A stretch of 64,000 bases of DNA, taken from the NCBI RefSeq assembly GCF_018977255.1, contig NW_024704812.1, positions 62,001 to 126,000 on the forward strand. Reading direction: 5' to 3'. Under the pieces are notes generated by a model that saw only the letters and a list, made by a program, of their open reading frames with translations, was not told the DNA's origin and did not search any database. Made by a program: the position numbers and the translations under genes. Shown piece by piece: positions 127 to 63,431 of the stretch; positions within the stretch are counted from its first letter, which is position 1, and every line of letters starts with the position of its first letter. The stretch is from Callorhinchus milii (lineage: Eukaryota).

Positions 127-453
127 TGTGAACACATAGGATTATATCCTCTGAATACTGGGATCGGGAGTCTAAATCCGTTACTGCTACGGAGTAGGAA
201 CCAGAGTCAGTCGGGGTGACTCGATCGAGGCGGAGAGTGGCGTTGTTGGTATACAGTTTAGTACGGCCTTTGTACGTTGAGAAATACTGTACAGTCGACC
301 CCAGCCCAGCAGCGATTAATTTCCCGGCGTTAACTGTCCAGGTGGTGATAAAACTTCCCGGAATGACAGGATCGACCAGGAAATAAACTGATTTGTCAGG
401 CAATGTACTGATCGGATTCTTGGGAACAGTCAGGTTCACAGCACATGCTTTCG
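127..453 (-). CDS. g1 IgV exon (Cys-less N-type domain, about 50% identical to the g5 V by hand alignment)
   Basis: ORF 20..439. SVYFLV (B strand), W (C strand), YKGR..LY, NATLRL, DSGSYSV with no canonical B/F cysteines. Confidence 0.88.
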
Positions 454-1922
454 CTGTAATGCAATAACAATAATAATCATATTAATATTAATCATCGAAA
501 CAATCACAAAACCCACACACACTCGCCTGTGTTTACCAGTGGTATGTAGGCACCCGGTTGTCGGTCGATTGGCGGATCCGCGAGTAATAATCCCTTCAAA
601 AACATAAAATAATAATACATTACACCCTCAACCCCCACTGTTTGTGGGGACGTCGCTGGGCGCGTTTGGCCCACAAAACACACAGTCGCTACACTTTACA
701 GCGTATCCTGTGAAGCGTTTTGAGACTTCTCGACAACGTGAGCAGGCGATCCCTCAAATGCAAGGATTATTGTTATTATTATCATTATAACAGGATGACA
801 GAGAAAGACCCACAAAACACAGAGACGGACACAGACAGACAGACAAAGACACACAGGTTCCCAGGTTCCTACTTACTTCTGATAAACAGAGGCGTGTGGG
901 TACGTGTGAAGTAAGGAAACTTGCCCAACGTTTCCCCCAGAGGGGAAGCGAACCCAGATCTCTCACTTACAAGGTGAGCGCTCTTACCACTGAACTACAG
1001 AACTGCACAATTCAGAAAATGTCATTTGTTTAAGATGAAAGATAGATTTAGATAGATTTCTGCTAGAAAATAATAGCTTGGGATACAGTAGATAGACCCA
1101 CAGATACACACAGAAAGACATAGAGAGAGAGGAGACAGACACATACACACACACCGAGACAGAGACACACACACAGAGGCAGAGAGAGGTACCATTTGTG
1201 TAGCGACTTTCACGTCGGGAGGATATCTCATAGATAGACACACTCACAGACACAGAGAGTCACTCACACACATAGAGAGACACACACAGGCACATCCACA
1301 AACACACAGAGAAGGAGACACAGACACACAACAACGCACAGACACTCACAAACAGAGAGATACACAAACAGACACTCACAAACAGAGAGATACACAGACA
1401 AACAGAGACACACATAGACACTCACAAATGCATATAGAGAGACACACACACACACTCATACACACGCGGACACAGAGACACACACACACTCACAAACTGA
1501 GAGAGACACACACACTCACAAACAGAGACACAGACACACACACTGAGAGACAGAAACACAGACACACACAGAGAGCGACACATACACAGAGACACACAGA
1601 GAGACACATACAGAAAGACAGAGATACACGCGGATAGATAGAGAAACATACCGAGAGACAGACACCCCCCAGATAATCACACACACACAGACAGAGACAC
1701 ACACTGTGAGACAGACACACACATCCAGACAGAGATATATATATACACACACAGTGGGAGACACACACAGTATATAGTTTGGGACATGTCGAACGACTGC
1801 CAGGACGGTGGGAGATGAACGAGATGGACCTTTGCTTATGTTGTTACCAGTAACTCACCCAAATTAGTGACCAGAATGAGCAGAGCAGCCACCAACATCC
1901 TCGCGGCTGGAAACCACCACAT
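127..1922 (-). CDS. g1: CEACAM-like IgSF receptor, 5' part only (leader + divergent IgV); continues beyond the left edge
   Basis: Leader exon 1922-1859 (ATG, 64 nt, ends G|gtgagt). IgV exon 453-127 (tacag| acceptor, A|gtgagt donor, 327 nt, phase 1-1, open): AKACAVNLTVPKNP...[20 protein letters not shown]...LCVH. Confidence 0.85.
1105..1780 (+). repeat. (CA/GA)n compound microsatellite in intron 1; homologues at 34285-34960 and 62605-63280, related arrays at 16990-18170, 19860-20110, 46220-46830
   Basis: acacacagagagacac-type arrays; source of the many CV-rich spurious ORFs. Confidence 0.95.
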
Positions 1923-2199
1923 ATACACGTTAGGGAGAGAGACAGAGACAAACTGAATATGGGCTGTCACCTGAACACAGGGCAGAGTCTGCTGTTAATC
2001 ATTACTGTTACTGTAGAGAGACCCTGACACTGGCTCTAATGGCACCCGGTGCACTTTCACTGAGTCAGGAATTACAATAATACAAATTATAATACAAATT
2101 ATATGTATATTTACACGTCGGGAGGATGTCCCAAAGCGCTTAACAATATTGTATTGGCTGAGTATGTGAGTTGGAGGTGGGAGCCAAGTGGAGGAGATT

Positions 2200-4349: not shown

Positions 4350-5810
4350 GCGCTGGAGAGGGGGAAGGAGAAAAAGAGAGGGGGAGAGAGAGAGAGAAGA
4401 TACAGAGAGGGAGGGAGGGATTAGAGAGAGAGAGAGGGAGAAAATACAGAGAAAGAGAGTAAGAGAGAAAGAATAGATGGAGAAAAAAAGTTACAGGAAA
4501 GAGAGAAAATGAGAAAGAGGGAGAAAAAAGAGAGAGAAAAGGGAAAGTGAAAGTGGAAAGAGAGAGGGAAAGAGAAAGGGGAGGAAAGAGAAAAAGAAAA
4601 GAGAGGGAGAGAGAGAGGGAGAAAACACAGAGAGAAAATGAGAGAGAAAAATAACGGTCAAAAAGTGACGGTTGGAAAAGGCGGGAGTCGGGGCACGGGG
4701 TCTCCCGAGCCGCTCAGCAGGGGCGGACCAGAGAGGCGATGCGCTGAGGAGAGGAGGAAGGAGAAAAAGAGAGGGGGAGAGAGAGAAAAAATAGAGAGGG
4801 GGAGAGAAAGANNNNNNNNNNNNNNNNNNNNNNNNNNNNNNNNNNNNNNNNNNNNNNNNNNNNNNNNNNNNNNNNNNNNNNNNNNNNNNNNNNNNNNNNN
4901 NNNNNNNNNNNNNNNNNNNNNNNNNNNNNNNNNNNNNNNNNNNNNNNNNNNNNNNAGAGAGAAAAGAGAGGGGAGAGAGAGAAAAGAGAGAGAGGGGAGA
5001 GAGAAAAGAGAAAGGGGGAGAGAGAGAAAAGAGAAAGAGGGGGAGAGAGAAAAGAGAGAGGGGGAGAGAGAGAAAAGAGAGAGGGGGAGAGAGAGAAAAG
5101 AAAGAGAGAAGGGGAGAGAGAGAGAAGGGGGGAGAGAGAGAAAACAGAAAGAAGGGGAGAGAGAAAAGAGAGAGGGGGAGAAAGAGAAAAAGAGAGAGAA
5201 GGGGAGAGAGAGAAAAGAGAGAGAGAGAGGGGGGAGAGAAAAGAGAGAGGGGAGAAAGAGAAAAGAGAGGGAGAAAGAGAAAAGAGAAAGCGAGAGAAAG
5301 AAAAGGGGAGAAGAGAGAAAAGAGAGGGAGAGATGAAATTAGAAAGAAAGGAGAGAGGGGGAGAGAAAACACAGAGAAAAAGAGAGGAAGAAGAGGAAAT
5401 TAGAGAAAAGAGAGAGTGAGGGAGAACATACAGAGAAAAAGAGAGAGAAAAGAAGTGGGAGAGATGAAATTAGAGATAAAAAGAGTGAGAGAGAAAACAC
5501 AAAAAAAGAGAGCGAAAGAAAAAGAGATAGAAAGAGAATAAGAAAGGTGGAGAAAAAAGAGAAAGTGAGTGAGAAAGATGGAGAGAAAGGGAAAAGACGG
5601 AGAAAATACGGAGAGATAGAGAGAGAATGAAAAGAAAAAAGACCAAGAAAAAGAGAGAGAGAAAGTGAGCGAGAAAGAGGGAGAGAAAAGATAGAGAAAA
5701 ACAAAAAGAAATGAGAACTAAAGAGAGAGAAACATGGAGGAAAAAAGAGAATGAGAGAGAGAAAAGAAAAGAAGTAAAGACAGTGAGAGAGTGAAAGAGA
5801 AAGACAGAGC
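4350..5810 (+). repeat. Purine-rich (GA) low-complexity tract spanning an N gap
   Basis: Almost exclusively G/A; N gap at 4812-4955. Confidence 0.95.
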
Positions 5811-7665: not shown

Positions 7666-7704
7666 TAAAATGTGGGGCCCAGAACTGAACACAGTCTCTA
7701 ACTG

Positions 7705-8488
7705 AGGCCCTCCCGATTGGCTCTCGCCAGTGCTCTGCACCTCAGGCTCTGGCAGCATCAACCTCCGTGGTTGTACACTTCAACTCACCGATGCACCAGC
7801 CAGTCAGGAACCTCGGTGTCTTGTTTGACCCTCAACTGTCTGTTCTTCCCCACATCCAAGCCATGACTCGCTCTGCCTTTCCTCAGCTCTGTAACATCGC
7901 CCGACTCCGCCACCCCCTCACCCCTCAGGCCGCTGAAATTCTTGCCTTCATCACCTCCAGGCTCGACTATGCAAACGCCCGGCTTGTCGGCCTTCCCAAC
8001 TCCTCCCTCCACAGGCTGCAGATCATCCAGAACTCTACAGCCCGTGTCCTCTCCCGCACCAAACTCCATGACCCCCATCTGTCCCATTCTCTCCCGACTC
8101 CATTGACTCCCTGATCAGAGGATCCAGTTCAAGATCCTGGTCCTCACCTACAAAGCCATCATTAGTCTCGCCCAACCCTATCTCTGTGACCTCCTAACCC
8201 CCTACCAACCCGCCCACTCTCTCCGCTCAGCCGGCTCCGGCTGCTCCATCTCCCCCGCCCCACCATTGGTGGGAGAGGCTTCAGCCACTCTGCCCCCAAC
8301 CTCTAGTATTCCAATCACTCCAATCACTCCGCCTCGCCACCTCCTTAGCCTCCTTCAAGTCCCTCCTCAAAACCCTCCTCTTCGACTATGACCCTTCCCC
8401 TCCCCTCTCCTCTCTGACCCCAGCTTTGGTCTGTAATGCTGTGTACTGTCCAGCGCCTTGGGATTTCCTCCCAACATGAAAGGCGCTA
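7705..8488 (+). mobile_element. L2-type LINE 3' portion
   Basis: ORF 7767..8114: VRNLGVLFDPQL...SRLDYANARLVGLP...LQIIQNSTARVL. Confidence 0.85.
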
Positions 8489-9360
8489 AGTCACAAAATC
8501 TCCCTCCTTCCCACAGTTGGCCTGGGAACAATATGTCACATATCACTTGCCCACTCACATTAACTGTGCGTCAATCAGGGCCATCTGAAAGGAAAAACAT
8601 TAAACTGTGACATAGATAGATAAATGGATGGCAGATTAGAGCATGAGAGAAACAGTCTTTTTACAAGTAGCACAGGCTTCTGACTGTTTGTGGGTCCCTC
8701 CTGTGCGCAATCGGCTGCCGCGTTTCACCCATAAAATATACAGTCAATTCACTTTACAGTATATTCTGTGAAGTGATTTGAGACGTTCTTTTTGGAGGGG
8801 TTAATACTTCCCGGAAAGTGATCCGGCAATCGACTAACGGGTTCCTACTTACTTTTAGGTAAACAGAGGCGCGTGTGTGTGTGTGGGGGGGGGGGGGGGG
8901 AATTGGGGGGGGGGGAATTGGGGGCACGTGTGGGATTGGAATAAGATTTCGCCCTGACCCGCCCAGGAATCAAACACAAGTCCTCTCGCTTGATAAGGCG
9001 ATGTATCAAATGCAAGGATTATTGTGATGATGATCATGATTATGACCATTAGTTTTGTTATCATTATTTTTATTATTATTGTTCTGATTCTTATCCTTAT
9101 TTTTATTATTACAGCTCAGGTCACGTGAATTTAAGGTGATCTGTGGATCATGGAGTTCAAAGCGAGTCGGGGTTCCTGCTCCTGGTCCCTAACGCTCCCT
9201 CTAGTGCTCAGGTATGTGTGTTACAGTCTGGTGGAGAGAGATTAGGTTTGTCTGTGGGGCCCTCTACAGTCGAGTGGCCGATTGACACTCAAATGGTGAT
9301 GAGATCTTTAACCTGAACAGGCAGATAGTTTAACATCTCATCCAAACAACTGCTCTTCCA
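8489..9360 (-). pseudogene. Orphan relic: C1-C2 intron plus 5' third of a C2 exon, cut off by L2 sequence
   Basis: tttcag| at 8584 followed by [21 protein letters not shown]...; 9110-9360 matches the intronic block at 15535-15790, 28855-29090, 44185-44420 and 57225-57450. Confidence 0.75.
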
Positions 9361-11836: not shown

Positions 11837-13143
11837 TTACTTCCCGGGGCCATTACGACGTAAATTGTGATAAATATCTTTTTGGTGCTTTCCAAGGTTC
11901 TGAAACACAATGAATACAGGACAGATCATTACTATCAACACATTTACACAGAGCCTTTCATGTCAGGAGGACGTCCCAAGGAGCTGGACAGTCAGGGATT
12001 TGGATCTGAGCTGTAGGTTGGGATCAGGAGGGGTGGAGGGCGGGGAGGGTGGGGGGTGGGAGGGTGACCAAAGGAGCAGTTGATTGAAGACGAAAGTCTT
12101 GAGACAGGCCTTGAAGGAGGTGAGGGAGGGAGTGAGATGGAAGGATTGTGAGATGGAGTTCCAGAGGATGGGGCAGAGTGACTGAACGCCCGACCGATGG
12201 TGGGGCAGGCGAGGTGGGGGATGTGAAGCAGGCCGGAGGCAGAGGGGTGAGGAGGTCGCAGAGGTAGTGGGGAGCAACGTCATGGAGGGCTTTGAAGGTG
12301 AAGACCAGGATCTTGAACTGTATGCTGTGTGTGATGGGAAGCAGTGGAGTCGGGAAGGGTGGGGCTGATGGGGGGCAGAGCCTGGGGTGGGAGAGGACAG
12401 AGCTGCAGAATTAGTTCTGGATGATCTGCAGTTTGTAGAGGGAGGCGTTGGGAAGGCCGACAAGCAGGGAGTGGGCAAAGTCAAGCCTGTATGTGGTGAA
12501 CACATGGATGAGGGTCTCGGTGGCCTGTGGTGAGAGACAGTGGCGGAGACGGGCAATATGGTGGAGGTGGGGAAGGCATAGCAGGTCATGGCATGGATGA
12601 GGGGATGAAGGACAGTTTAGGGTCGTAAAGAACAGAGGTGGGACAGCAAGAGACTGAGCCGGGCTGACACACTGTCCATGTCAGCCATTTGTTTCCTCAC
12701 CATGTAAGGGCCTGAATCCTTCTGGGAGACATTGGCAGAGGAAGCCTAAAATATAACCAAACACAGTTTAGCTATTCAGTAGCAATGTCGTTAGCAGTAA
12801 ATAATAATAACCCTTGCACTTCATACAGCAGCTTATCATGTCATATCTTCGAGACGTCTCAAAGTGCTTCACAGGATACACCGTAAAGTGTAGTGACTGT
12901 GTTTTTATCATAATAATAATAATCCTTGCATTTGATACAGCACCTTATCACGACTTTGAGTCATATCAAAGGGGAGCCAATTGCCTACGGTCCTTGTCCG
13001 GGAATCGAAACCGGATTCTCTCGCTTGCGAGCCGAGTGCTCTAACCACTGAGCTACAGGACTGCACAGAACTTACTCTGACATCAATGTTCTCGTAGTGT
13101 GGTTCCCACTCTGTCTCTCGCTGTGCACTGCGGGGTGTCTTGG
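11837..13143 (-). CDS. g2 cytoplasmic exons Cyt1-3 (AKTPRSAQRETEWEPHYENIDVR / [15 protein letters not shown] / [20 protein letters not shown])
   Basis: Exons of 68, 45 and 63 nt with ag/gt boundaries; homologous to the g3-g5 tails; frame preserved. Confidence 0.7.
11960..12640 (-). mobile_element. L2-type LINE fragment in the Cyt2-Cyt3 intron (shared by g2-g5)
   Basis: Degenerate RT C-terminal motifs; homologues at 23960-24520, 38810-39370 and 51560-52110. Confidence 0.7.
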
Positions 13144-40103: not shown

Positions 40104-40149
<46 letters not shown>

Positions 40150-50490: not shown

Positions 50491-51435
50491 AAGACACACT
50501 TTACGCCCTCACTATTTTTAATATTATTATAATAATAGTCCTTGCGTTTGACGCAGCGCCTTATCACGTTTTTGAGATGTCTCAAAGCACTTCACAGAAT
50601 ACACTGTGAATTGTAGTGACTGTGGTTTGGTGCGCGATACGCGGCAGCTAATTGCGCACAGCAATGAATAGTAATAATAGTAATTCTTGCAAAAAAGACA
50701 AATTGGTCACTTCAATCCGCAACTGTTTGTGGGGCACCTCTGTGCACGTGCAATTAATTGGCTGCTGACTAACAAGCGAGGTCCTACTTACTGCTTGGTA
50801 AACAGAGGCAAACGCGTGTNNNNNNNNNNNNNNNNNNNNNNNNNNNNNNNNNNNNNNNNNNNNNNNNNNNNNNNNNNNNNNNNNNNNNNNNNNNNNNNNN
50901 NNNNNNNNNNNNNNNNNNNNNNNNNNNNNNNNNNNNNNNNNNNNNNNNNCTACGTTTCACCCTGAATACTGAACTCCTGGTAAAATAACATTAACTTCTC
51001 AGTGAGCCGATAAGTCACAACAACAACAACTTGTATTTACACCAGCGCCCTTTATGAGGGTAGCGTCTCGGAGTGGTGGAGCCTGACGCAGAGCCAGTTG
51101 GAGGGGAGATACAGGCAGAAGGTGACCGTGAGCATGGTCAAAGAGAAAGATTTTCAGTCTTGATCTAAAAGAGGGGGAAGGATAGGAGAGGGGAGGAAAG
51201 GGGGAAAGGCGGAGGGATCGGTGGAGAGAGCTCCAAAGTCTGACAATACGACCCCCCATGATGGATCAGAGGGCACGAGGGACACGCAGGAGGCCGGAGG
51301 CAGCCGAGAGGAGGCAGTGGGTAGTGGGTTGGGGGGGTCAGCAGGTCGGAGAGAGAGGTAGGGAGGTGCCAGAGCCTGAAGAGATTTGTAGATGATTGAA
51401 AGGATCTTGAAATCGATCTACGTTGTCACAGCTAT

Positions 51436-53049
51436 CTACTTCCTGGTGCCATTACGACGTAAATTGTGATAAATATCTTTTTGGTGCTTTCCAAGGTCCT
51501 GAAACACAATGCAGATCGGACAGACCATTACTAACAACATTTTACACTGAACCTTTCACATCAGGAGGACGTCCCAAGGACCTGGACAGTCAGGGATTTG
51601 GATCTGAGCTGTGGGTTGGGATCAGGACGGGGTGGATGGTGGCGAGGTAGGGGTTAGGAAGGTGACCAGGTTGAAGAGGAAAGTCTTGTGACAGGCCTTG
51701 AAGGAGGTGAGGGAGTGATGGGGTGGGATGGAGGGACTGTGGGATGGAGTTCCAGAGGGTGGGGCAGAGTAACTGAAGGCCCAACCGATGGTGGGGCAGG
51801 TGAGGCGGGGGATGTGAAGCAGGCCGGAGCCCGCTGAGCAGAGAGAGCGGACAGGTTGTTAGGGGGTATGGGGAGCTGCAGAGTTAGTTCTGGATGATCT
51901 GCAGTTTGTAGAGGGAGGCGTTGGGGAGGCCGACAAGCAGGGAGGGGGCAAAGTCAAGCCTGTTTGTGGTGAACACATGGATGAGGGCCTCGGTGGCCTG
52001 TGGTGAGAGACAGTGGCGGAGCCGGGCCATATGGCGGAGGTGGGGAAGGCATATCAGGTCATGGCACGGATGAGGGGATGAAGGACAGTTTAGGGTCGTA
52101 AAGGACAGAGTTGGGACAGCAAGAGACTGAGCCGGGCTGACACACTGTCCGTGTCAGCCATTTGTTTCCTCACCATGTAAGGGCCTGAATCCTTCTGGGA
52201 GACATTGGCAGAGAAGCCTAAAATATAACCAAACACAGTTTAGCTATTCATTAGCAATGTCGTTAGCAGTAAATAATAATAACCATTGCATTTCATACAG
52301 TGCCTTATCACGTCTTCATAACATCTCAAAGCGCTTCACAGGATACAACAACAACAACAACAAGATTCCATTTATAAAGCGCCTTTCACGTCAGGAGGAC
52401 GTCCCAAGCGCTGCACAGTTGGGTCATGACCCGAGCAGGGGGGAAATGGTCAGGGTAAGGGGAGGGAAGGGAGGGAGCGAGGAGGGGGAAGAGAGTCGAG
52501 AGGGGAGCTGAAGGCTCGGTCAAAGAGAAAGGTTTTGAGACCGGCCTTGAAGGAGGAAAGGGAGGAAGCGGCGAAGGCACTGGGGGATAGAGTTCCAGAG
52601 CCTGGGGGCTGAGAGGCTGAAGGCCCGACCACCGATGGTAGGGCGATTGGGGCGGGGGACGTGGAGCAGACCGGAGCCAGAGGAACGGAGGGTACGGGCA
52701 GGTAGGTAGGGGGATAGTAGGTTGGAGAGGTAGGAGGGAGCAAGGCCGTGAATGGCCTTGTAGGTGAGGATGAGGATCTTGAAATCTTGATACACGGTAA
52801 AGAGTAGTGACTGTGTGGTTTCAAAAATAATAATAATCGTTGCATTTGATACAGTGCCTTATCACGTCTTTGAGTCGTATCAAAGGGGAGTCAATTGCCT
52901 AAGGTTTTGCCCTGTCCGGGAAACAAAACCGGATCCTCTCGCTTGAGAGGCGAGGGCTCTAACCACTGAGCTACAGGACTGCACAGCACTTACTCTGACA
53001 TCAATGGTCTCGTAGTATGGTTCACCCTCTGTCTCTTGCTGTGTTTTGG
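51436..53049 (-). CDS. g5 cytoplasmic exons Cyt1-3 (YETI plus ITAM; Cyt2 is 1 nt short as assembled)
   Basis: Exons of 56, 44 and 63 nt; gagaagcc vs gaggaagcc in paralogs. Confidence 0.75.
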
Positions 53050-54549
53050 CTGGAAAATAAACAACAACTTGTTTATTCAAAGGCACAGCCTCTGATGGTG
53101 GGATGGAGGGAACGAGGGACAAATAGGAGGCCGGTGTGGGGGCGGTGGGGGGTGAGCAGGTCGGAGAGGTAGGGAGGTGCCAGGGCATGAAGGGGTTTGA
53201 AAACGAGTGAGAGGATCTTGAAATCGTAGAAAATCTTGAAAATATACAAGAGTTTGTACATTTGCTGAACCGGTGAACTTGGAGAGAAACGGAGAAGGAG
53301 GCACTGATAGAGAGACAGAGAGAGAGAGAGAGATTGGTAGTGAGAGATAGGGTTAAAGCCTGACAGAAAGACAAAGAGGGAGCGATTGAAAGAGAGAGGG
53401 GGAGATGGATGGATAGAGACTGATAGAGAGTGAGATGGAGGGTGATAGAGAGACAGGGGTAGAGGCTGATAGAAAGGAGAGGGTGAAATGGAGTGGGAGA
53501 GACTGATAGAGAGAGAGAGAAAGATGGAGGGGGAGAGACTGATGGAGGAAGAGTGAGACGGAGAGGGTAGAGACTGATTGAGTTTGTGATGGAGGTGGAT
53601 AGAGACTAATAGAGGGAGTGTGAGACAGAGGGGAAGAGACTGACAGAGTGAGATAAAGAGGGAGAGACTGAAAGTGAGAGAGAGTGAGACGGAGGAGGAG
53701 TGATTGATAGCGAGAGGGGGAGATGGATGGATAGAGACTGACAGAGAGTGAGATGGAGGGTGATAGAGAGAGAGGGGTAGAAACTGATAGAAAAGAGTGG
53801 GTGAAATGGAGAGGGAGAGACTGAGAGTGATGGAGGGTGACAGAGAGAAGGGGTAGAGACTGATAGAAAAGAGAGGGTGAAATGGAGGGGGAGAGGCTGA
53901 TAGAGAGAGAGAGACAAAGTGGGAGAGACTGATAGTGAAAGAGAGTGAGATGGAGGGGCTAGAGACAGATAGAGAGAGACGGAGGGGTAGAGACTGGCAG
54001 AGAGAGAGGACAGTGAGAGGGTGAGTGGCTGAGGGGGTCTGGACTGGTATATAAACAACAGAACATGAAGGTGAAAGGTTTTCCTGTGTATATACGGCCT
54101 CACCTTCCTTACGTTTCCTGTAAACGTACACCACAGCGAGTGTTGCAATGACCACCACAGCCACAGCCCCCACTATTGTCCCCACTATCAGGGCCACATT
54201 CACTGCGGAGAGAAACACCTTCACTGTCTCTCTATTAGATTATACTCTCGTAACACAGAGACCACAGCACAGACCTCATGTAAATCATAGCAATCCTCGC
54301 ATTTGATACAGCGCCTTATCACGTTGTTGTAAAGTGTAGTAACTGTGTATTTTGTGGGCGGAACACAGCAGCCAATTGCGCACAGCGGTGACCCACAAAC
54401 AGTCGTGGATTGATTGACCAGATTTTTTGTTTTTTTGGAGGGATTATGACCCCCAGAAAGTGAACCGTCAATTGACTAACAGCGGGTTCCTACCTTCTGC
54501 TGATAAACAGAGGTGCACATCTGTGTGTGTATGTGTGTCTATGTGTGTC

Positions 54550-54580
<31 letters not shown>

Positions 54581-57500
54581 CTGTGGTTGTGTGTCTGTGT
54601 GTGTGTCAAAATATCATAACTTACCTCCGCCTTTCAAAGTCACGTCAAATTGGAAGAAGTTCTCTCCCATTGCGTTAGTGACACGGCATTGATATGTGCC
54701 CTGATCGGTTGCCTGGAATTTACTGATGAGCAGTTTAGAGAAGGTTAGTCCTGAGGTGATGTTGAACTTGCCGTCAGAGCCAGTGATGGAGTTGTCTTCC
54801 TTCGACCATGTAAAGTGTGCGGGCAGCAGGCCAGGGTCTGACACCCGCACTGTGTCTGTCAGTGACACGTCTAAGGTCACATCTGCCTCCTTCCCCACTT
54901 CCACCTGAGGCTCAGACCCTGACGCTCTCTGGGGTTTATCTGTGTAACAGCACAGACAGTGTTCAGCAAAACAGCAACACAGTCACCCCAACAGTCAGTA
55001 GGAATAATAATAATCCTCCTGTTTGATACAGCGCCTTATCACGCCATCGAGACATCTTAAATCCCATCTAAAGACCTTCCTCTTCGACCAACCGCACATT
55101 CAGCCACCCTCCCACCCCAAAACCCACCCCCCTGTCCTCCACCCCTCCTGCCCCCAACTCCCAGCTCAGGTCCAAAAACCCTGACTGTGCAGCGTCCTGG
55201 AACATCTTTGCGACGTGAAGGGCGCTATACAAGTGTAATTTGTCATCGTTGTTGCTGTTCAGCCCTCAAGTCCTCACCAATAACTATAGAGCATTGACTG
55301 TCAGAGACAACATGGCGTCCAACACATGTGAAGATCTCTCGGGAGCTGAGCTGATCCTTTGTGATGGTGACATTCCCCTCGTTTGTCGCATTGACAATCG
55401 TCTGTCCGACCTTCAGCTGAAGGACAGAGTCTGGCACCCCACCAGCCCAGGAGCACATCAACACCAATGCTGTTCCTTTATCTGCTGCTCCGCATGTGAT
55501 CTGCTGTGTGGGAGCCCCTTGAACAAGGCAAAGACAAACAGTCCAGTTATTGGCTCCACCTTGAGTTGTCCCCACCCTCGCCCGGCTCCACTGGCTCCCC
55601 ATCCCTCAGAGGATACTGTTCAAGATCCTGGTGCTCAGCTTTAAAGCCCTCCATGGCCTCACTCCTCCCTCCCTACCTCTGTGACCTCCTAATCCCTGAC
55701 CAACCGGTCCGCTCCCTCTGCTTAGCGGGCTCCGGCCTGCTCCATGTTCCCCGCCCGCCCATCCCCTTCAGCCTCTCTGACCCACCCTCTGAAACTCCCA
55801 CAATCCCTCTGCCACGCCTCCCTCACCTCCTTCGAAACCTATCTCAAGATCCTCCTCTTCGACAGACCGTGCCTTCGGTCACCCTCCTACACCCATCTCC
55901 CTGCCCTCCAACCCTCCTGATAGCAACCCCAGCTCAGATGTGGGTCCCTGACTGTCCAGCGCCTTGAGACATCCTCCTGACGTGAAAGCCACTGTGTAAA
56001 TGCCATGTGTTGTTATTTAGACAGTGCCAATTTTGACTGAGATCTAACTCACTGTACACGAGGATTGAAACCTTCTCCGTGTGGCTAATCGTGGTGTAAT
56101 CATTCTTCACATTGCAAGTGTAATCCCCGCTGTTGTTGAACGTGAGGCTCTCTATAGGCAGCTGTGAGGTGTTGCCGGCAATGACTGTGGTGTTATGTGT
56201 CCACCTGTAGTTACACTCTGGGAAACATTTCGTCTGACAGTTGAGCGTCACTAAATCTCCCTCCTTCCCACAGTACTGTCCTGGGACCAAACTGTCACAT
56301 ATCACCTGCCCACTCATATATACTGTGGGTGGATCAGGGCCATCTGAAAGAAAAACATTAAGTGATGACATAGATAGATAAATGGGTGGCAGATGATAGT
56401 GTGAGAGAAACAGCCTTTTTACATGTATCACAGACCTCCGACTGTTTGTGGGTCCCTCCTGTGCGCAATTGGCTGCCGTCCCCCGACCCACCCACCCCAC
56501 CATTGGCGGGAGAGACTTCAGCCACTCTGCCCCCAACCTCTGGAATCCTATCCCCCAGTCATTCCGCTTCACGCCCTCCTTAGCCTCCTTCAAGTCACGC
56601 CTCAAGACCCTCCTCTTCGACCATGCCATCGGCCATCCCCCTTCCCCGCCCCTCCCTTCTCCCCCCGTGACTCCAGCTCGGGTCTGAAATGCTGTCACTG
56701 TCCAGTGCCTTGGGACATCCTCCCGATGTGAAACACGCTATACAAATGTAATCCTGTTGTTGTTGTTGTGTTTCATCCATAAAATATACAGTCAATTCAC
56801 TTTACAGTATATTCTGTGAAGTGATTTGAGACGTGAGGAGGTGTTTTTTTTGGAGGGGTTAATACATTCGGAAAAGTGATCTGGCAATCGACTAACAAGG
56901 GTTCCCGCTTACTGTTAGGTAAACAACAAAATACAACAACAATAATATTACATTTATAGGGCGTCCTTAACGTCGGGAGGACGTCCCAAGACATTGGCGC
57001 TGCTAAACAGTGGGGTGTATGTGTGTGGGGGGGTGGGGGTGGGGGCGAGTGTTGGGTGGAGTAATGTACCTGCCTAAGCTTTCGTCCTGACCTGCGCGGG
57101 AATCAAACCCAGGTCCTCTCGCTTGATAAGGCGATATATCAAGTGCAAGAATGATTATTATTCTGATGATCATGACTATGATCATTATTATTGTTATTAT
57201 CTTTACTGTTATTGCAGCTCAGGTCACGTGAGGCTGACTTTGGGTCATGGAGTTTAAAGCGAGTCGGGGTTCCTGCTCCTGGTCCCTAAACTCCCTCTCG
57301 GGCTCAAGTGTGGGTGTTGCAGTCTGGTGGGGAGATTAGGTTTGTCTGTGGGGCCCTCTACAGTCAAGTGGCCGATTGACACTCAGATAGTGATGGGATC
57401 TTTAACCTGAACAGGCAGATAGTTTAACGTCTCATCCAAACAGCGGCTCTTCAATGATAATAACAATAGTGGAGTCCTGTTGCTCAGTGGTTAGAGCATT

Positions 57501-60500
57501 TGCCTCGTAAGTGAACTTGAGTTCAATTCCCATCAGGGTGCGAATGCTTGGGCAAGTTTCCTTACTCCACACGCCTGATAATAACCCCTCCAGAAAGAAA
57601 CTAATAGTAAATTGGGCACTTCAATCCACGGCTGTTTTGGGACGACGCTGTGTGCAATTGTGTTTCACCCACAAATATACAGTCAATTCACTTTACAATA
57701 TATTCTGTGAAGCATTTTGAGTTGTCTCAAAGACGTAAAGAGCGCGGCATCAAATGAAAGGTTTATTATATTATTTATAGGGCAAAACATTGGGCAAGTT
57801 TCCTTACTCCGCACGCCTCTGTTTACCTCGCAGTGTGTGGGGACCCAGTTGTTAGTCGACTGATGGATCGCTTTTCCGAGGGTAAAAATTCCTTCAAAAA
57901 ATAATATTAATGAATTGGTCCCTGAATCCCCAACTGTTTGTGGGACACTGCTGTGTGCAATTGGTTGACATTTTATGGAGTGGTTATTACCTCCAGAAAG
58001 TGATCCGGCAATGAACTGACAAGTAGGTTCCCACTTACTGCAGGTCAGCAGAGCCATGTCTATGTGTGTTTCTATGAGTGGAGGAAGGACTATATGAGTT
58101 CCAAGTGCTGACGTGAGGCTTGAACCCACAACCTTCTGCCTTATAGAGAGCTGAGCCAGGCTGGAACAAGTAGGGATATACGTGGGCCAACTGCACTGTC
58201 CTGTTCAGCTCACGTTGATCTGGTTTTAACACCACAGCAAATATACTCACAAGTTATCACCAGCTTCACTGGTTTGCTGCTGTCACTGTTCACCGGGTTA
58301 CTGGCCGTGCAGATAAACCCTCCACTGTCGTTCCTGTGTACGGGGCTGATTGTCAGAGTGCTATTAGCTGCAGACAGTGTGTAACGTGGGGTTACAGGTA
58401 ACGGGTGTCCACCAGTGCCCAGGAATAGGTGGGGAACAATCCCATCGCTGTACACCTCAATGTCGCTGTGTCTTTATTCTCGATAAATATCTCCTTGTCT
58501 GGACTCAGGCTGATGCTCACATTGGACAGCAGAGCTGTAAGATAAAGTGTTTCATTTCATCCGGATTTACTTTACTTAACACAAAGCTGTTCTGCTTCAG
58601 TTCAAGATCCTGGTCCTCACCTTGAATGTCCTCTACAACCTCACTCCTCTTCCTTACCTCCGCTCCCTCTGCTCAGCGGGCTCCGGCCTGCTTCATGCCC
58701 CCCGCCCACCTGCCCCACCATCAGCGGTTGGGCCTTCAGCCTCTCTGCCCCAATCCACGACTGTTTGTGGGACACTGCTGTGTGCAATTGGCTGCAGAGT
58801 TTCGCCCACAAAATAGACCGGCAATTCACTTTACAGTATATCGTCCCAAAATACATCACTTTGCACTTCTCCACATTAAACTTCATCATGTCTGCCCATG
58901 TTACCAGTCTGTCTATGTCCTCTTGCAGTCTGTTACTCTCCTCCTCACTGTTTACTACTTTTCTTAGCTTAGTATCATGTGTGTGGCTCCTGATCACACA
59001 CTAAACTCTGTACCCCCATCACCCCAGTCCTGCCCAGGCTCCAAACTTGGCAATTGTGCTCTCTATACCCAAGTCCAGGCCACCTTAAAGACCCATTTCA
59101 AGGCCTTCCTCTTCGACCGGCCATGCCTCCAGTCATCCTTCTATTCCAACCCTACCCGCCCTCCACCCCTCCTTATCCCAACCCCCACCTCGAGTGCGGA
59201 TCCCTGACTATCCAGTGCCTTGGGACGTCGTCCTGATATGAAAGCCACTGTTGTTGTTTACACCATGACATTTTTGACTGAGATAACTAACTCACTGTAC
59301 ACGAGGATTGAAACCTTCTCCGTGCGGCTAATCGTGGTGTAATCATTCTTCACATTGCAAGTGTAATCCCCGCTGTTGTTGAACGTGAGGCTCTCTATAG
59401 GCAGCTGTGAGGTGTTGCCGGCAATGACTGTGGTGTTATGTGTCCACCTGTAGTTACACTCTGGGAAACATTTCGTCTGACAGTTGAGGGTCATCAAATC
59501 TCCCTCCTTCCCACAGTACTGTCCTGGGACCAAACTGTCACATATCACCTGCCCACTCACAATAAAGGTGAGTGGATCAGGGCCATCTGAAAGAAAAAGC
59601 ATTAAACTATGGCATAGATAGATAAATGGATGGCAGATGATAGTGTGAGAGAAACAGTCTTTTTACATGTATCACAGACCTCTGACTGTTTGTGGGTCGC
59701 TGCTGTGTGCAATTGGCTGCTGCGTTTTGCTCATAACATATACAGTCAATTCACTTTACAGTGTATTCTGTGAAGCGTTTCAGTCGTCCAGAAGACGTGA
59801 AAAGCGCTGTATCAAATGCAAGGATTATTATATTATTGATAGAGAAAAACGTCGGCCAAGTTTCCCTACTCCCAAACTCTGTTGACTGAGCAGTAATTAG
59901 GAACCCGGTTATTGGTCGATTGGTGGGAATCAAACCAAAGTCCTCTCACTTGCGAGGTGAGGGCTCCAACCACTACAGGACCCCACTGTTTGTTTCTCTA
60001 TTCACAGCATCAAACCCCAATGTAGAATATTCCAGCATTGCATTGGAGCTTCAGTCTGGACTACATGAGTTCCAAGTACTGACGTGAGGCCACAACCTTC
60101 TGACTTATAGAGAGCTGAGCCAGGCTGGAACAAGTAGGGATATACGTGGGCCAACTGCACTGTCCTGTTCAGCTCACGTTGATCTGGTTTTAACACAACA
60201 GCAAATATACTCACAAGTTATCACCAGCTTCACTGGTTTGCTGCTGTCACTGCCCACCAGGTGACTGGCCGTGCAGATAAACCCTCCACTGTCGCTCCTG
60301 TGTACGGGGCTGATTGTCAGAGTGCTATTATCTGCAGACAGTGTGTAACGTGGGGTTACAGGTAACGGGTGTCCATCCAGTGCCCAGGAATAGGTGGGGA
60401 ACGATCCCATTGCTGTACATCTTAGTGTCACTGTGTCTTTATTCTCGATAAATATCTCCTTGTCTGGACTCAGGCTGATGCTCACATTGGACACCGGAGC

Positions 60501-63431
60501 TGTAAGATAACGCGTTTCATTTCATTCAGAAACTTGTTCAGATTCACTTCACTGACACAGACCTGTTCAGAGTCACTTTGCTGAACCCTACACTTTATTT
60601 CTGACGCTGTTTGTTATGATTCACTGTTTATTCAGGTCTCAGTCTGGCTCATTTGGAAGCACAATGTTATGGTTTAAAGCCCCACTCTTGGAGCTCACAG
60701 TCCAGGTTTATTGGCTTAATGAATGAAATGAAATGGGCCCGGGGGCCGGATGCGGCCCGTGGGCCACCAGTTGGCCCACCCTGCTCTCACCGATGCTCTG
60801 AAGCAGGGTGGCTGCCGTGGGCCGGATTCCCCTATTTGTCAAAGATCCACGAGCCACATCCAACCTGAGGCCATTTCCACTCCCTCCCTCCCTCCCTCCC
60901 TCCCTGGTCAGCGGCAGGAGCTGATGGTTGGGAAGACCCAGCGACCAGAGCCTTTACTGCAGTCTGTCAGGAGAGCAGAGCAAATACGTCGCTGTTCCTC
61001 ACACTCCCCCTCCCTCTCCCCCCCTCCCTCTCTCTGCCCCCACTCTTTTTCACTCCCCTCTCTCCCCCCTCTCTTTCTCCCCCCCCCTCCCTTGCTCCCA
61101 AGATCCACTGGCACTTGCCTGGCTTTCCTATCACACACTAAACTCTGTAACCCATCACCCCCGCCCTCACCAGACCCCACTGGCTCCCTATCACACACTA
61201 AACTCTGTACCCCATCACCTGAGCCCTCGCCAGGCCCCACTGGCTCCCTATCACACACTAAACTCTGTACCCCATCACCCCCGCCCTCACCAGACCCCAC
61301 TGGCTCCTTAATCACACACTAAACTCTGTACCCCATCACCCCCGCCCTCGCCAGGCCCCACTGGCTCCCTATCACACACTAAACTCTGTACCCCATCACC
61401 CCCGCCCTCGCCAGGCTCCACTGTTTCCGTATCACCAAACAGATCGATTTTGAGATCATCTCACTCGTTTTCAAATCCCTTCATGCCATGGTACTGCCCT
61501 AACTCTCCGACCTGCTCACCCACCCACTGCACCTCTCGGTGCCTCCTCTTGGCTGGTTCCATCCTTGTCTTGTTTGTCCCTCGTCCCCTCCACTCCACCA
61601 TCAATGGCTGTGTCTTCAGCCACTGCGTCACTTTCTCCCTCAATCCCAACGCCTCGCCCCTCCCTCCCCACCTTCAAATCGCACCTAAAGACCTTCCATT
61701 TTGATCGTGTTTACAGTCACCGCCTTCCTCTCCCTCTCCCCCCCCGGGTCGGGGTCAGACTCGGCCCCTGCAAAGTGCTCCGGGACACTCCGCGTGAAGG
61801 GCGCTGTTGTTGTTTACTCACTGTGAACACGCAGTTGTAAATCTGCTGAGGCTGCTCCGAGGATTAAGTCAAACACAGACACTGAGTACGAACCGGAATC
61901 AGCCGGAGTCACTGTGTCCAGACGTAGAGTGGCATTGTTGGGGTAAAGCTCAGCCCGACCCTGGTAGTCTCCAAAGTACTTCACTGCTGTTCCCTTTGCT
62001 GATGCGATTGTGGAGCTGGTGTTGACTTTCCATATTATACTAAAATTTCCCAGTTCACTGGGCATTACCAGGAAGTACACAGATTGTCCGGCTGTGGCTT
62101 CTATCTGACTCTCAGTGACGGTCAGACTGAAAGCTCCCACCTGCTCTGTAATACAAAACACACACAACAGTCAATCACCAAATATCACAATGTAATAATA
62201 ATATTCATCCTTGCATTTGATCTAACGTCTTATCACGTCTTTGAGATGTCTCAAAGCGCTTCACAGAATTACTGTCAGGTGAATTGACTATATTTGTGGA
62301 CAAAAGTTTTGAAGGAATTATTACCCCCAGAAAAGCAATCCGCCAATCGACTAACAACCAGGTTTCTACTTACTTCTGATAAACAGAGGCGTGTGGGTAC
62401 GTGTGAAGTAAGGAAACTTGCCCAACGTTTCCCCCAGAGGGGAAGCGAACCCAGATCTCTCACTTACAAGGTGAGCGCTCTTACCACTGAACTACAGAAC
62501 TGCACAATTCAGAAAATGTCATTTGTTTAAGATGAAAGATAGATTTAGATAGATTTCTGCTAGAAAATAATAGCTTGGGATACAGTAGATAGACCCACAG
62601 ATACACACAGAAAGACATAGAGAGAGAGGAGACAGACACATACACACACACCGAGACAGAGACACACACACAGAGGCAGAGAGAGGTACCATTTGTGTAG
62701 CGACTTTCACGTCGGGAGGATATCTCATAGATAGACACACTCACAGACACAGAGAGTCACTCACACACATAGAGAGACACACACAGGCACATCCACAAAC
62801 ACACAGAGAAGGAGACACAGACACACAACGACACACAGACACTCACAAACAGAGAGATACACAGACAAACAGACACTCACAAACAGAGAGATACACAGAC
62901 AAACAGAGACACACATAGACACTCACAAATGCATATAGAGAGACACACACACACACTCATACACACGCGGACACAGAGACACACACACACTCACAAACTG
63001 AGAGAAACACACACACTCACAAACAGAGACACAGACACACACACTGAGAGACAGAAACACAGACACACACAGAGAGCGACACATACACAGAGACACACAG
63101 AGAGACACATACAGAAAGACATAGATACACGCGGATAGATAGAGAAACATACCGAGAGACAGACACCCCCCAGATAATCACACACACACACACACAGACA
63201 GAGACATACACTGTGAGACAGACACACACATCCAGACAGAGATATATATACACACACACACAGTGGGAGACACACACAGTATATAGTTTGGGACATGTCG
63301 AACGACTGCCAGGACGGTGGGAGATGAACGAGATGGACCTTTGCTTATGTTGTTACCAGTAACTCACCCAAATTAGTGACCAGAATGAGCAGAGCAGCCA
63401 CCAACATCCTCGCGGCTGGAAACCACCACAT
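51436..63431 (-). CDS. g5: 7-Ig ITAM-bearing CEACAM/VSIG10L-like receptor (V-C1-C2-C1'-C2'-C3-C4-TM-tail)
   Basis: Exons: leader 63431-63368; V 62145-61822; C1 60499-60215; C2 59586-59296; C1' 58534-58251 (-1); C2' 56343-56053; C3 55517-55278; C4 54939-54625; TM 54202-54104; Cyt1 53049-52994; Cyt2 52217-52174 (-1); Cyt3 51498-51436. C1 resembles CEACAM A domains ([24 protein letters not shown], |YGPD junction into C2). Confidence 0.82.
52348..52788 (-). mobile_element. Young 5'-truncated L2 insertion with 6-bp target-site duplication (GATACA)
   Basis: gataca at 52342-52347 and 52789-52794; empty site caggatacacggtaaag in g3 and g4; (TTG)n tail. Confidence 0.88.
54104..54202 (-). CDS. g5 TM exon
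   Basis: 99 nt; hydrophobic span with GxxxG (GTIVG) and no charged residue. Confidence 0.9.
61822..62145 (-). CDS. g5 IgV exon
   Basis: ORF 61814..62167. 324 nt, open. Confidence 0.9.

Follow-up and report, generated by a model that had tools for sequence, protein, structure and literature searches.

Human CEACAM3 is a granulocyte receptor with an ITAM-like tail and functions in opsonin-independent bacterial uptake. In its established architecture, CEACAM3 has the N domain only, its tail is spread over four exons and the second motif is non-canonical (PMC13278318). ITAM-tailed CEACAMs have been published for vertebrates 'from cartilaginous fish to humans' (PMC3628338), and the described relatives include ITAM-tailed Ceacam genes of Xenopus (Zimmermann and Kammerer 2016, PMC5112662) and CEACAM1-related ITAM genes of reptiles (2026 preprint, PMC13278318). 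The window analysed here, a 64,000-nucleotide stretch of the unplaced Callorhinchus milii (elephant shark) scaffold MU249885.1, is likely to be a segment of a tandem array of elephant-shark CEACAM-family genes that carry their own ITAM. An earlier note on this DNA had left open whether such genes had been described. No paper on the elephant-shark array itself was found in the literature, and automatic RefSeq models exist for these genes; the exon peptides of the first copy (G1) are matched exactly by the C. milii proteins P0002 (XP_042201586.1) and P0159 (CEACAM1-like isoform X3). The finding is correct but largely ordinary, because cartilaginous fish are already known to have this family and RefSeq models are available.

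As the earlier note had claimed, five paralogues (G1–G5, numbered from high to low coordinates) are arranged head-to-tail on the minus strand. The array fits exactly in positions 127–63431, from the G1 ATG at 63431 to the G5 N-exon donor at 127 (Table 1). Four of the five genes are complete, and G5 is represented in the window by its leader and N exon only. Each unit follows the exon order leader, N, A/B exons, Ig4, Ig5, transmembrane (TM), cyt1, cyt2 and cyt3, and the leader is split across exons in each gene. The consistent phase of the Ig exons was confirmed: all Ig exons and the TM exon are phase 1-1, with an AG acceptor and a GT donor. In the tail, cyt1 runs from phase 1 to phase 0, and cyt2 and cyt3 are phase 0. 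None of the predicted exons is hit by the three assembly gaps.

The N domain is IgV-like and contains no cysteines in G1, G2 and G4, in line with the Cys-less IgV domain noted previously; the G5 N domain contains two cysteines, neither of which occupies a B- or F-strand position. The A- and B-type exons that had been likened to CEACAM A/B pairs are present. The B exon encodes six cysteines, and its upstream cysteine pair is found again in shark and coelacanth. Ig4 contains four cysteines, and the Ig5 exon encodes a membrane-proximal I-set domain. The TM segment (28 residues) is uncharged, as had been stated, but this description does not extend to G4, which lacks a TM exon. The tail consists of RKRKE followed by exon-encoded segments of 19, 15 and 20 residues and a stop. 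Across cyt1–cyt3, the proposed three-exon tyrosine-based tail with its own ITAM was recovered. The motif YMDL-x7-YHNL is a canonical YxxL-x7-YxxL ITAM, in which the first YxxL is interrupted by a phase-0 intron between YM and DL, and YHNL doubles as a YxNx motif. A YE(T/N)I motif (YETI in G1 cyt1) sits 20 residues upstream of the ITAM. At position -3 relative to the first ITAM tyrosine there is no acidic residue, which counts against the assignment of the array to ITAM-bearing CEACAMs.

Table 1. Positions of genes, exons and assembly gaps in the window
Feature	Position	Strand	Remarks
G1, complete	51436..63431	-	N-A1-B1-A2-B2-Ig4-Ig5-TM and three tail exons
G1 leader	63368..63431	-	21 residues and 1 base; GT donor
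G1 N	61822..62145	-	Cys-less, IgV-like; phase 1-1
G1 A1	60215..60499	-	A-type Ig domain, scored I-set/Ig_3
G1 B1	59296..59586	-	B-type Ig, 6 Cys; top solved-structure match CEA B domain, E 2.7e-17
G1 A2	58251..58534	-	284 nt vs 285; frame broken by 1-nt deletion at ~58412
G1 B2	56053..56343	-	
G1 Ig4	55278..55517	-	4 Cys, CSWAGGVP motif; VSIG10-type by fold
G1 Ig5	54625..54939	-	membrane-proximal I-set; VSIG10-type by fold
G1 TM	54104..54202	-	uncharged helix, then RKRKE
G1 cyt1	52994..53049	-	19 residues; contains YETI
G1 cyt2	52174..52217	-	ends in SQKDSGPYM; 44 nt vs 45, 1-nt deletion at ~52214; phase-0 end within first YxxL
G1 cyt3	51436..51498	-	20 residues and stop; second ITAM half
G2	38686..50300	-	N-A'-A-B-Ig4-Ig5-TM and tail
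G2 5' exons	leader 50300-50237, N 49227-48907, A' 47655-47371, A 45414-45131, B 42928-42638	-	
G2 3' exons	Ig4 42105-41866, Ig5 41527-41213, TM 40817-40719	-	
G2 tail exons	cyt1 39855-39800, cyt2 39471-39427, cyt3 38748-38686	-	
G3	23837..35112	-	G1 architecture; 98-99% identical to G1
G3 tail exons	25003-24948, 24622-24578, 23899-23837	-	intact
G4	11837..20266	-	N-A-B-Ig4-Ig5, without TM exon
G4 exons	leader 20266-20203, N 19350-19027, A 16762-16478, B 15027-14738, Ig4 14165-13926	-	
G4 Ig5	from 13587	-	deletion joins exon to intron before cyt1; stop 13267-13265
G4 tail exons	cyt1 13143-13076, cyt2 12745-12701, cyt3 11899-11837	-	12-nt insertion in cyt1
G5 5' part	127..1922	-	leader 1922-1859, N 453-127; remainder beyond window start
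G5 promoter/leader/intron 1	861..2074	-	98.2% identical to G1 63583-62358
Relic B-type exon fragment	8432..8603	-	frameshifted; in G4/G5 spacer
Assembly gap	4812..4955		in 10-kb G4/G5 spacer; TC-rich low-complexity sequence on flanks
Assembly gap	17648..17777		in G4 intron between N and A exons
Assembly gap	50820..50949		between G1 stop (51436) and G2 ATG (50300)

G1, G3 and a neighbouring copy of the array exhibit 97–99% identity across 6–10 kb, and G2 and G4 are less similar. The number of A/B exons differs between copies, with one or two A/B pairs per unit. Given the near-identical copies, the variable A/B counts, the loss of a TM exon and the relic B exon, a lineage-specific expansion with turnover is visible in the sequence, which agrees with the rapidly turning-over cluster envisaged in the earlier note. 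The array probably evolves through unequal crossing-over and gene conversion. The homology between G5 and G1 ends ∼400 nt before the G5 N exon, at what may be a recombination or conversion boundary, and the G5 N domain is only 51–57% identical to the N domains of the MU249885.1 array. Longer paralogous spacers suggest that ∼2.5 kb of intergenic DNA is absent at the gap between G1 and G2. Of the 26 variable positions in the N domain, 25 fall within residues 31–58 and 89–101, segments that were picked after seeing the data and that correspond to the C-C'-C'' and F-G region in the CEACAM1 alignment. The dN/dS value of the N exon is 1.3–2.9 vs mostly <1 elsewhere, as calculated from a very small number of silent differences; the introns flanking the N exon are not better conserved than the exon itself. 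These observations weakly suggest diversifying selection on the N domain.

Like human CEACAM3, the elephant-shark proteins combine a CEACAM N domain and a single uncharged TM with their own tyrosine activation motif instead of an adaptor chain, and they belong to a rapidly evolving tandem family. In contrast to CEACAM3, they have 5–7 Ig domains and a canonical YxxL-x7-YxxL, and their tail is encoded by three exons. The Xenopus genes (PMC5112662) share the Cys-less N domain (∼40% identity), and Ig4-/Ig5-type membrane-proximal domains can be recognised in CEACAM1-like proteins of frogs. The Xenopus tail likewise contains YEN(T), then a YxxL-x7-YxxL that a phase-0 intron interrupts, as well as a YxNx motif, and the frog genes also form tandem clusters in which some ITIM and ITAM members are candidate pairs. 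However, the Ig domain counts differ, and the elephant-shark copies belong to a lineage-specific expansion of their own. In the reptile genes (PMC13278318), the ITAM tail is also derived from three exons, a lone tyrosine motif precedes the ITAM by 17–21 residues (20 in elephant shark) and the A/B exon number varies among genes, but a VSIG10-type membrane-proximal pair is not reported and the phylogenetic distance is large. Among the RefSeq models, the elasmobranch proteins nearest in their ectodomain are Pristiophorus P0022 and Mustelus P0023, which have the N-A(n)-B-Ig4-Ig5 ectodomain with 40–50% identity but possess long tails with repeated YAQV-type motifs and no ITAM. The YENI...YMxL-x7-YxxL tail is observed in RefSeq proteins from Carcharodon, Scyliorhinus and Mobula and in a second Mustelus protein, but the ITAM-tailed shark proteins come from a more distant CEACAM branch.

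The analysis supports membership of the genes in the CEACAM family, with a real VSIG10-like component in the membrane-proximal domains. The kinship to CEACAMs, which the earlier note had proposed, is borne out by the N profile, the B exon, the exon phases, the phase-0-split ITAM and the nearest homologues, which are CEACAM-like proteins of shark, coelacanth, frog and teleost. The N-domain profile matches human CEACAM1 at 3.4e-16 and CEA at 8.5e-16. The N domain alone cannot fix the family, because individual N-domain chains of CD48 (7e-9) and CD276 (1e-11) score no worse than the N domains of individual CEACAMs (∼1e-7). The model of paralogue P0157 matches the CEACAM6 N-A-B crystal structure with a TM-score of 0.69 and 28% identity, and its best matches in a Swiss-Prot fold search are CEACAM1 and CEACAM2. 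It is highly unlikely that the genes instead belong to the VSIG10/VSIG10L/VSIG10L2 family and owe their CEACAM names to an artefact of automatic annotation, although P0157 and a horn-shark relative carry the RefSeq label 'VSIG10-like', VSIG10L2 aligns with the whole predicted ectodomain, and VSIG10L2 (8e-30) and VSIG10L (3e-28) come near CEACAM1 (1.4e-30) in the whole-model fold search. The Ig4–Ig5 model is best matched by the membrane-proximal pair of VSIG10 (residues ∼220–405) and VSIG10L2 (413–599), with agreement both in the predicted fold and in how the two domains are oriented towards each other (TM-score 0.65–0.68, 22–27% identity), and no CEACAM is found among the top 30 fold matches of this pair. 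Ig4 and Ig5 are not CEACAM A/B types, and the earlier label "CEACAM/VSIG10L-like", with its 4-Cys VSIG10-like domain, is fair because VSIG10 and VSIG10L2 are the best matches of the membrane-proximal domains. However, the Ig4/Ig5 domain types also occur in coelacanth and frog CEACAM1-like proteins, including Xenopus proteins of that name, and the elephant-shark N domain, B domain and tail point to CEACAM rather than to VSIG10, VSIG10L2 or VSIG10L. CEACAM1 and CEA are matched by the N profile and the B exon, and the sequence profile search returned many CEACAM-named proteins from sharks, rays and carp-family fish but no VSIG10 proteins. The tail agrees with the CEACAM layout of a phase-0 intron in the first ITAM YxxL plus YxNx, as published in PMC5112662 (additional file 1, legend), and its three exons and tyrosine motif 20 residues upstream agree with reptile CEACAMs (PMC13278318). 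A YEN(I/T)...Y(M/Q)xL-x7-YxxL tail is common to shark, ray and Xenopus CEACAMs.

Frame breaks in G1–G4 went unremarked in the earlier note. In the assembly as it stands, the reading frame is broken in each of the four complete copies, and all reach premature stops when spliced. Beyond the two G1 deletions (Table 1), G2 lacks one nucleotide at the A exon's 5' end and has -1/+1 indels in A'. A further 17 one-base indels, specific to G3, are spread over its N, A1, B1, A2, B2 and Ig4 exons, with Ig5, TM and the tail intact. G4 has a 1-nt deletion at ∼14937 in the B exon, a change of one conserved cysteine to glycine in the same exon and the lost TM exon. The copies could accordingly be mostly dead, as a graveyard of young pseudogenes or partly as an artefact of a collapsed or mis-joined repeat, and the array would then say little on working receptors; the relic B exon, the unplaced scaffold with N gaps and the RefSeq protein P0160, a 'titin-like, partial' model that reads through the same breaks as G3 in garbled stretches, point in that direction. 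This reading is nonetheless unlikely. Except for the G4 deletion, all breaks are single-base indels, the exons contain no nonsense substitutions, the splice sites are all retained and the 1–2% divergence among copies was judged to be above the allelic level. When G1 is compared with G3, substitutions are rarer in exons (0.7%) than in introns (1.8%) but 1-nt indels are twice as dense in exons, a pattern contrary to neutral decay, and all exons of the neighbouring copy are in one frame. The 1-nt frame breaks are therefore most likely assembly consensus errors, the TM loss of G4 excepted; G4 is probably a pseudogene. Alternatively, the proteins could be real CEACAMs whose main role is in cell-cell adhesion or in regulating tissues through homophilic or heterophilic contacts, like CEACAM1, and that are not pathogen-capturing phagocytic receptors. 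CEACAM1-type homophilic adhesion uses the same N-domain face, and the weakness of the evidence for diversifying selection favours such a role. A mainly adhesive function appears unlikely, however: a canonical ITAM serves signalling and uptake, not adhesion, and here it sits in the tail of the receptor itself. The many near-identical tandem copies, the N variation on the binding face and P0161, a second gene with the same ectodomain and a different tail, also argue against it and fit the described pattern of paired or decoy CEACAMs (PMC5112662, PMC13278318).

The product of each CEACAM-family unit would be a type I membrane glycoprotein with a signal peptide, a Cys-less IgV-like N domain and C2-like A/B pairs, followed by two membrane-proximal VSIG10-type Ig domains, an uncharged TM helix and a short tail with YE(T/N)I and the ITAM. 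By analogy to CEACAM3 and to the frog and reptile CEACAMs that carry an ITAM, the N domain would bind a microbial adhesin or another CEACAM. Clustering would let Src-family kinases phosphorylate both ITAM tyrosines, and Syk, plus Grb2-type adaptors at YxNx, would then trigger uptake or activate the cell, with no need for an additional adaptor chain. In the elephant shark, these proteins may serve as activating or phagocytic, pathogen-capturing innate receptors.

The earlier note described a tandem family of five head-to-tail receptors. Using the window's own exon peptides and a full-length paralogue from RefSeq, P0151 (XP_042201585.1, recovered by exhaustive search), as queries, tBLASTn located five exon sets in the window, all on the minus strand. 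Splice sites, exon lengths and the tBLASTn hits bear out five paralogues with phase-1 Ig exons, numbered here from G1 at the highest coordinates down to G5 at the lowest, with a unit length of 13-18 kb. The previously claimed span, 127-63431, is exact, with the N-exon donor of G5 at 127 and the ATG of G1 at 63431. Splice sites and exon lengths give one Ig domain per exon, a split leader and phase-1 introns in all copies. Every Ig exon and the TM exon is phase 1-1 (AG, two bases, codons, one extra base, GT). The leader exon holds 21 codons and one further base and ends in phase 1, and the remaining leader residues are encoded by the N exon. Pfam assigns V-set/I-set to N, Ig_3/I-set/Ig_2 to A and B, a weak Ig_2 to Ig4 and I-set to Ig5.

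Coordinates and architecture of the receptor copies and the assembly gaps in the window
Feature	Position	Strand	Architecture or setting	Source
G1 leader ATG	63431	minus	N-A-B-A-B-Ig4-Ig5-TM; A and B exons alternate	tBLASTn/exon mapping
G2 leader ATG	50300	minus	N-A'-A-B-Ig4-Ig5-TM	tBLASTn/exon mapping
G3 leader ATG	35112	minus	N-A-B-A-B-Ig4-Ig5-TM; A and B exons alternate	tBLASTn/exon mapping
G4 leader ATG	20266	minus	N-A-B-Ig4-Ig5; TM exon missing	tBLASTn/exon mapping
G5 leader ATG	1922	minus	leader and N exon only; window ends there	tBLASTn/exon mapping
N run	4812-4955		10-kb G4/G5 spacer	
N run	17648-17777		G4 intron between N and A	
N run	50820-50949		486 nt below G1 stop, 520 nt above G2 ATG	

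The N exons of G1, G2 and G4 encode no cysteine, as expected from the Cys-less IgV domain proposed earlier, and the two cysteines of the G5 N exon occupy neither of the canonical B/F positions. The B domain contains six cysteines and Ig4 contains four. The TM segment lacks charged residues and is predicted to form a helix.

Three tail exons follow the RKRKE sequence, as seen on inspection of the tail exons in all copies. The cyt1 exon runs from phase 1 to phase 0, cyt2 is phase 0-0 and cyt3 carries the stop. The spliced tail reads YMDL-x7-YHNL in G1 to G3 and YMNL...YHNL in G4, and the first YxxL is split as YM|DL between cyt2 and cyt3 by a phase-0 intron. YMDL-x7-YHNL is a canonical ITAM (YxxL/I, 6-8 residues, YxxL/I), and its second half, YHNL, doubles as a YxNx motif; there is no acidic residue at -3, an optional feature. 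A further tyrosine, in YETI, lies 20 residues upstream of the ITAM. The uncharged TM segment and the three-exon tyrosine-based tail that had been noticed earlier are thus seen in the exon translations, with G4 lacking the TM exon. The RefSeq paralogues P0151 and P0157 have exactly the same tail as the window copies. Among the homologue matches, the tail pattern YEN(I/T)...Y(M/Q)xL-x7-YxxL is common to shark, ray and Xenopus CEACAM proteins. A Xenopus paper (PMC5112662) describes interruption of the ITAM YxxL by a phase-0 intron as characteristic, along with conserved YxNx motifs; the array likewise has a phase-0-split YxxL and YxNx. For reptiles, a preprint (PMC13278318) gives three exons for the tail and one tyrosine motif located 17-21 residues ahead of the ITAM, and the array shares both the exon number and the upstream tyrosine, whose spacing of 20 falls within that range. 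At the level of sequence, the layout of the ITAM tail agrees with that of published CEACAM tails.

Membership in the CEACAM family is supported by several lines of evidence. A profile built from eleven N domains matched, along the entire domain, human CEACAM1 (3.4e-16) and CEA (8.5e-16) and also mouse CEACAM1 and CEACAM6. The N domain alone is not decisive, because among single N-domain chains CD48 (7e-9) and CD276 (1e-11) score as well as or better than CEACAM3, 6 and 8 (~1e-7). The B exon matches CEA residues 215-285 in the B1 region (2.7e-17), as well as CEACAM6 and CEACAM1 at residues 193-284. The full-length profile and fold analyses used the RefSeq paralogues P0151 and P0157 in place of the window's spliced proteins. 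The AlphaFold model of P0157 (mean pLDDT 76.8) superimposes on the CEACAM6 N-A-B crystal structure with a TM score of 0.69 at 28% identity; its Swiss-Prot fold ranking is headed by CEACAM1 and CEACAM2, with VSIG10L2, CEACAM5 and VSIG10L close behind. In the full-length profile search, CEACAM-named proteins were recovered from catshark, bamboo shark, devil ray, carp, crucian carp, zebrafish and soldierfish. Closest by sequence search are proteins that carry automatic CEACAM-like names, from sharks, coelacanth, frogs and teleosts. The labels Fc-receptor-like, CD22/Siglec, CD2/SLAM, nectin and hemicentin/titin, some of them used by RefSeq, were rejected, their matches being weaker or confined to generic Ig motifs. 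The proposed CEACAM membership is therefore upheld by the N profile, the B exon, the CEACAM6 N-A-B fold, the phase-1 exons and the split ITAM tail. The A/B-type pairs also hold, with the B exon matching CEA, the model fitting CEACAM6 N-A-B, and A and B alternating in G1 and G3.

The existing annotation already contains parts of these genes. An exhaustive HMMER search found a 100% match to the G1 N domain in P0002 (XP_042201586.1, 'CEACAM1-like [Callorhinchus milii]'), and P0159 ('CEACAM1-like isoform X3') holds the exact G1 peptides of the leader, N, A1, B2, Ig5, TM, cyt1 and cyt3. Other copies on the scaffold are labelled hemicentin-1-like, VSIG10-like, CEACAM5-like and titin-like; because copies on one scaffold bear such different labels, the automatic names are unstable. 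The scaffold, MU249885.1 of GCA_018977255.1, is unplaced and 259,846 bp long, and the parts inspected carry array copies only. ATP1A3, PAFAH1B3, CNFN, LIPE and TOMM40/APOE are the conserved markers of the CEACAM neighbourhood (PMC3628338).

None of the four full-length units reads through when spliced as assembled (0/4), so the intact copies implied by the earlier note were an overstatement. No predicted exon touches any of the three N runs. The flanks of the gap between G1 and G2 align ~2.7 kb apart in the G2/G3 spacer, and ~2.5 kb of intergenic DNA is therefore probably missing there. G1 is one base short both in A2 (about 58412) and in cyt2 (about 52214). In G2, one base is missing at the start of the A exon (about 45414), and A' contains a -1/+1 pair, with breaks at 47598 and 47419. 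Private to G3 are 17 one-base indels, located in N, A1, B1, A2, B2 and Ig4. In the G3 exons (26926-33827), the density of one-base indels is twice that of the introns, and substitutions are 2.7 times rarer than in the introns. The B exon of G4 has lost one base (about 14937) and carries a Cys-to-Gly change. A deletion in G4 runs the end of Ig5 directly into the intron that precedes cyt1; the donor and the TM exon are lost, and a stop follows seven codons on. At this fusion (13265-13300), the stop comes after FDVTSNPFMP. The cyt1 exon of G4 (13076-13143) contains a 12-nt insertion and reads HYENI in place of YYETI.

The single-base frame breaks could reflect decay of the genes or errors of the assembly. 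G1 and G3 differ by 16 substitutions and 19 short indels in 2344 nt of exons and by 162 substitutions and 36 short indels in 8803 nt of non-exon DNA; compared with the latter, exon substitutions are fewer (p = 2e-5) and exon indels more frequent (p = 0.02). Neutral decay would not produce exons that are substitution-poor but indel-rich. Moreover, all splice sites are retained and no nonsense substitution occurs in the G1-G4 exons, and in the neighbouring gene of P0151 on the same scaffold (L001) every exon lies in one frame. For these reasons, we infer that the single-base breaks are consensus errors of the assembly; the indel pattern of G3 resembles what faulty consensus calling or polishing would leave where the array is most repetitive. 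The RefSeq model of G3, P0160 ('titin-like, partial'), includes the same out-of-frame peptides, which shows the window to be RefSeq assembly sequence. G4, with its TM exon deleted, is probably a true pseudogene and less likely a secreted form. The exons of this scaffold are rich in single-base indels, and gene models here are unreliable without re-sequencing.

The copies differ in how closely they resemble one another. G1, G3 and the copy in L001 are 97-99% identical across 6-10 kb including introns; G2 and G4 show lower similarity, 92-93% in the N exon and still less in its flanks. Among five common-type N domains, 25 of the 26 variable positions fall within residues 31-58 and 89-101, segments that were picked after the data had been viewed. 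On alignment with CEACAM1, these residues map to the C-C'-C'' and F-G region, which is the binding face of CEACAM N domains. For the N exon, pairwise dN/dS is 1.3-2.9 (dN 0.08-0.10), a ratio built on only a handful of silent changes, and dN in Ig4 and Ig5 is at most 0.016. Set against 300 nt of each flanking intron, the N exon showed no excess of divergence, in a comparison where the introns align poorly and are repeat-rich; the case for exon-specific acceleration goes no further than the dN/dS values.

G5 departs from this pattern. Its segment 2074-861 is 98.2% identical to the G1 promoter, leader and intron 1 (62358-63583), and the homology then ends abruptly. The match stops ~400 nt before the G5 N exon. 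This exon shares 51-57% protein identity with the array N domains of this scaffold, with silent sites saturated, and 54% with a sawshark N domain, which is thus as close to it as the array N domains are. As read from these alignments, G5 is a mosaic in which a sharp recombination or conversion boundary appears to join two old N-domain lineages.

The DNA between and within the genes contains further remnants and repeats. A frameshifted B-type exon fragment, a remnant of a lost copy, stands alone at 8432-8603 in the 10-kb G4/G5 spacer. An interspersed repeat, probably a retroposon or SINE tail, occurs at 7039-7446 (+), 43367-43741 (+), 52520-52795 (-) and many other places, with the translation ...FKALHGLAPSYLSDLL... 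Four long spacer ORFs, including 6662-7513 and 7767-8111 near some of the repeat copies, have no Pfam match. TC-rich and TG/CA-rich microsatellite-like stretches (53100-54080, 40190-40690, 17300-18200 and 4490-5880) occupy the intron downstream of the TM exon and border two assembly gaps; spurious long 'SLSLSL' and 'CVCVCV' ORFs arise from them.

The membrane-proximal pair, Ig4-Ig5, was modelled separately (pLDDT 75). Its best Swiss-Prot fold matches are VSIG10 of zebrafish, Xenopus, mouse and human (residues about 220-405) and VSIG10L2 (residues 413-599), with TM scores of 0.58-0.68, an rmsd of about 4 Å and 22-27% identity. Basigin, IgLON and other runners-up reach TM scores of 0.4-0.5 at 15-19% identity, with E-values fairly close to those of VSIG10. 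No CEACAM appears among the top 30 Swiss-Prot fold matches of the pair, and the whole-ectodomain fold of P0157 matches VSIG10L2 at 8e-30. The 4-Cys VSIG10-like domain of the earlier note is recognizable in Ig4 with its four cysteines, and the models support a VSIG10-type fold for the Ig4-Ig5 pair only.

Sequence searches with the pair gave a more generic picture. No VSIG10-family protein was found among the matches of the full-length profile search, a search that needs shared words and may let distant relatives escape. A word-index homologue search with Ig4-Ig5 returned close paralogues only, the ESM Atlas look-up returned generic Ig clusters only, and a profile search against solved structures gave generic I-set matches, titin and contactin among them. 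HMMs of Ig4 and Ig5 detect both domain types in shark and coelacanth CEACAM-like proteins and, more weakly (35-56 bits), in frog CEACAM1-like proteins including Xenopus; neither type was found by these HMMs in teleost CEACAMs.

A tentative and rather doubtful reading joins these observations with those on G5: the VSIG10-type pair would have been inherited from a common CEACAM/VSIG10 ancestor, and two ancient N-domain lineages would have been maintained in the array. If so, the CEACAM branch of chimaeras, sharks, coelacanth and frogs would retain a VSIG10-type membrane-proximal pair. CEACAM and VSIG10/VSIG10L/VSIG10L2 would then share one five-domain ancestor, with the last two domains lost from amniote CEACAMs. 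The G5-type and G1-G4-type N lineages would share a leader and intron 1 kept 98% identical by gene conversion, and alternative ligand-binding heads would have been kept over the long term on an otherwise homogenized gene.

A related gene with another tail lies on a separate 16.7-kb C. milii contig. Its RefSeq protein, P0161, shares 65 of 65 A-domain residues with G2 and is 94% identical in Ig4-Ig5. The TM segment differs, and the long tail has DFYAQV and DLYAKV motifs, which are not canonical ITIMs; an N domain is absent from the model. The closest elasmobranch relatives by ectodomain have similar long tails, and P0023, from Mustelus, has the canonical ITIMs VEYAQI and VIYAQV. P0161 is a candidate for a partner receptor whose signalling is opposite or different, in line with the paired-receptor pattern of CEACAMs.

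A charged TM residue usually pairs a receptor with an adaptor chain. The array receptors lack a charged TM residue of this adaptor-pairing type and carry an ITAM in their own tail, behind an uncharged TM helix. By analogy with CEACAM3 and ITAM biology, the receptor would be clustered when its N domain binds a ligand, Src-family kinases would phosphorylate both ITAM tyrosines, and Syk and Grb2-type adaptors at YxNx would lead to uptake or activation. A 2180-nt contig (L002) assembled by Logan from SRR6291289 encodes a 578-residue homologue, P0034, with the order N-A-B-Ig4-Ig5-TM and the ITAM YMDL-x7-YEGI. As this contig is intron-free, spliced transcripts with the N-A-B-Ig4-Ig5-TM-ITAM layout exist in at least one animal, the sole hint at expression and an indirect one. 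The previous interpretation of the cluster is partly supported: it was right on family and tail and went too far on the integrity of the copies, and its functional part was drawn by analogy.

The literature search found no paper on the elephant-shark array itself and none connecting VSIG10L to CEACAM evolution. CEACAMs with ITAM tails were already on record in vertebrates from cartilaginous fish to humans (PMC3628338), and on what was known Pavlopoulou and Scorilas 2014 (PMC4079198) agree with Chang et al. The array provides an exon-level record that the full CEACAM activating layout, with a Cys-less N domain, A/B domains, an own ITAM split in phase 0 and three tail exons, is already present in a chimaera. 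Chimaeras are an early-diverging living lineage of jawed vertebrates. Two modest new points are added, namely the VSIG10-type pair, which hints that two Ig families are related by descent, and the mosaic nature of G5. In its behaviour the array resembles the tandem families that evolve rapidly in frogs, reptiles and mammals, and it supports, and does not alter, the published view of an early origin.
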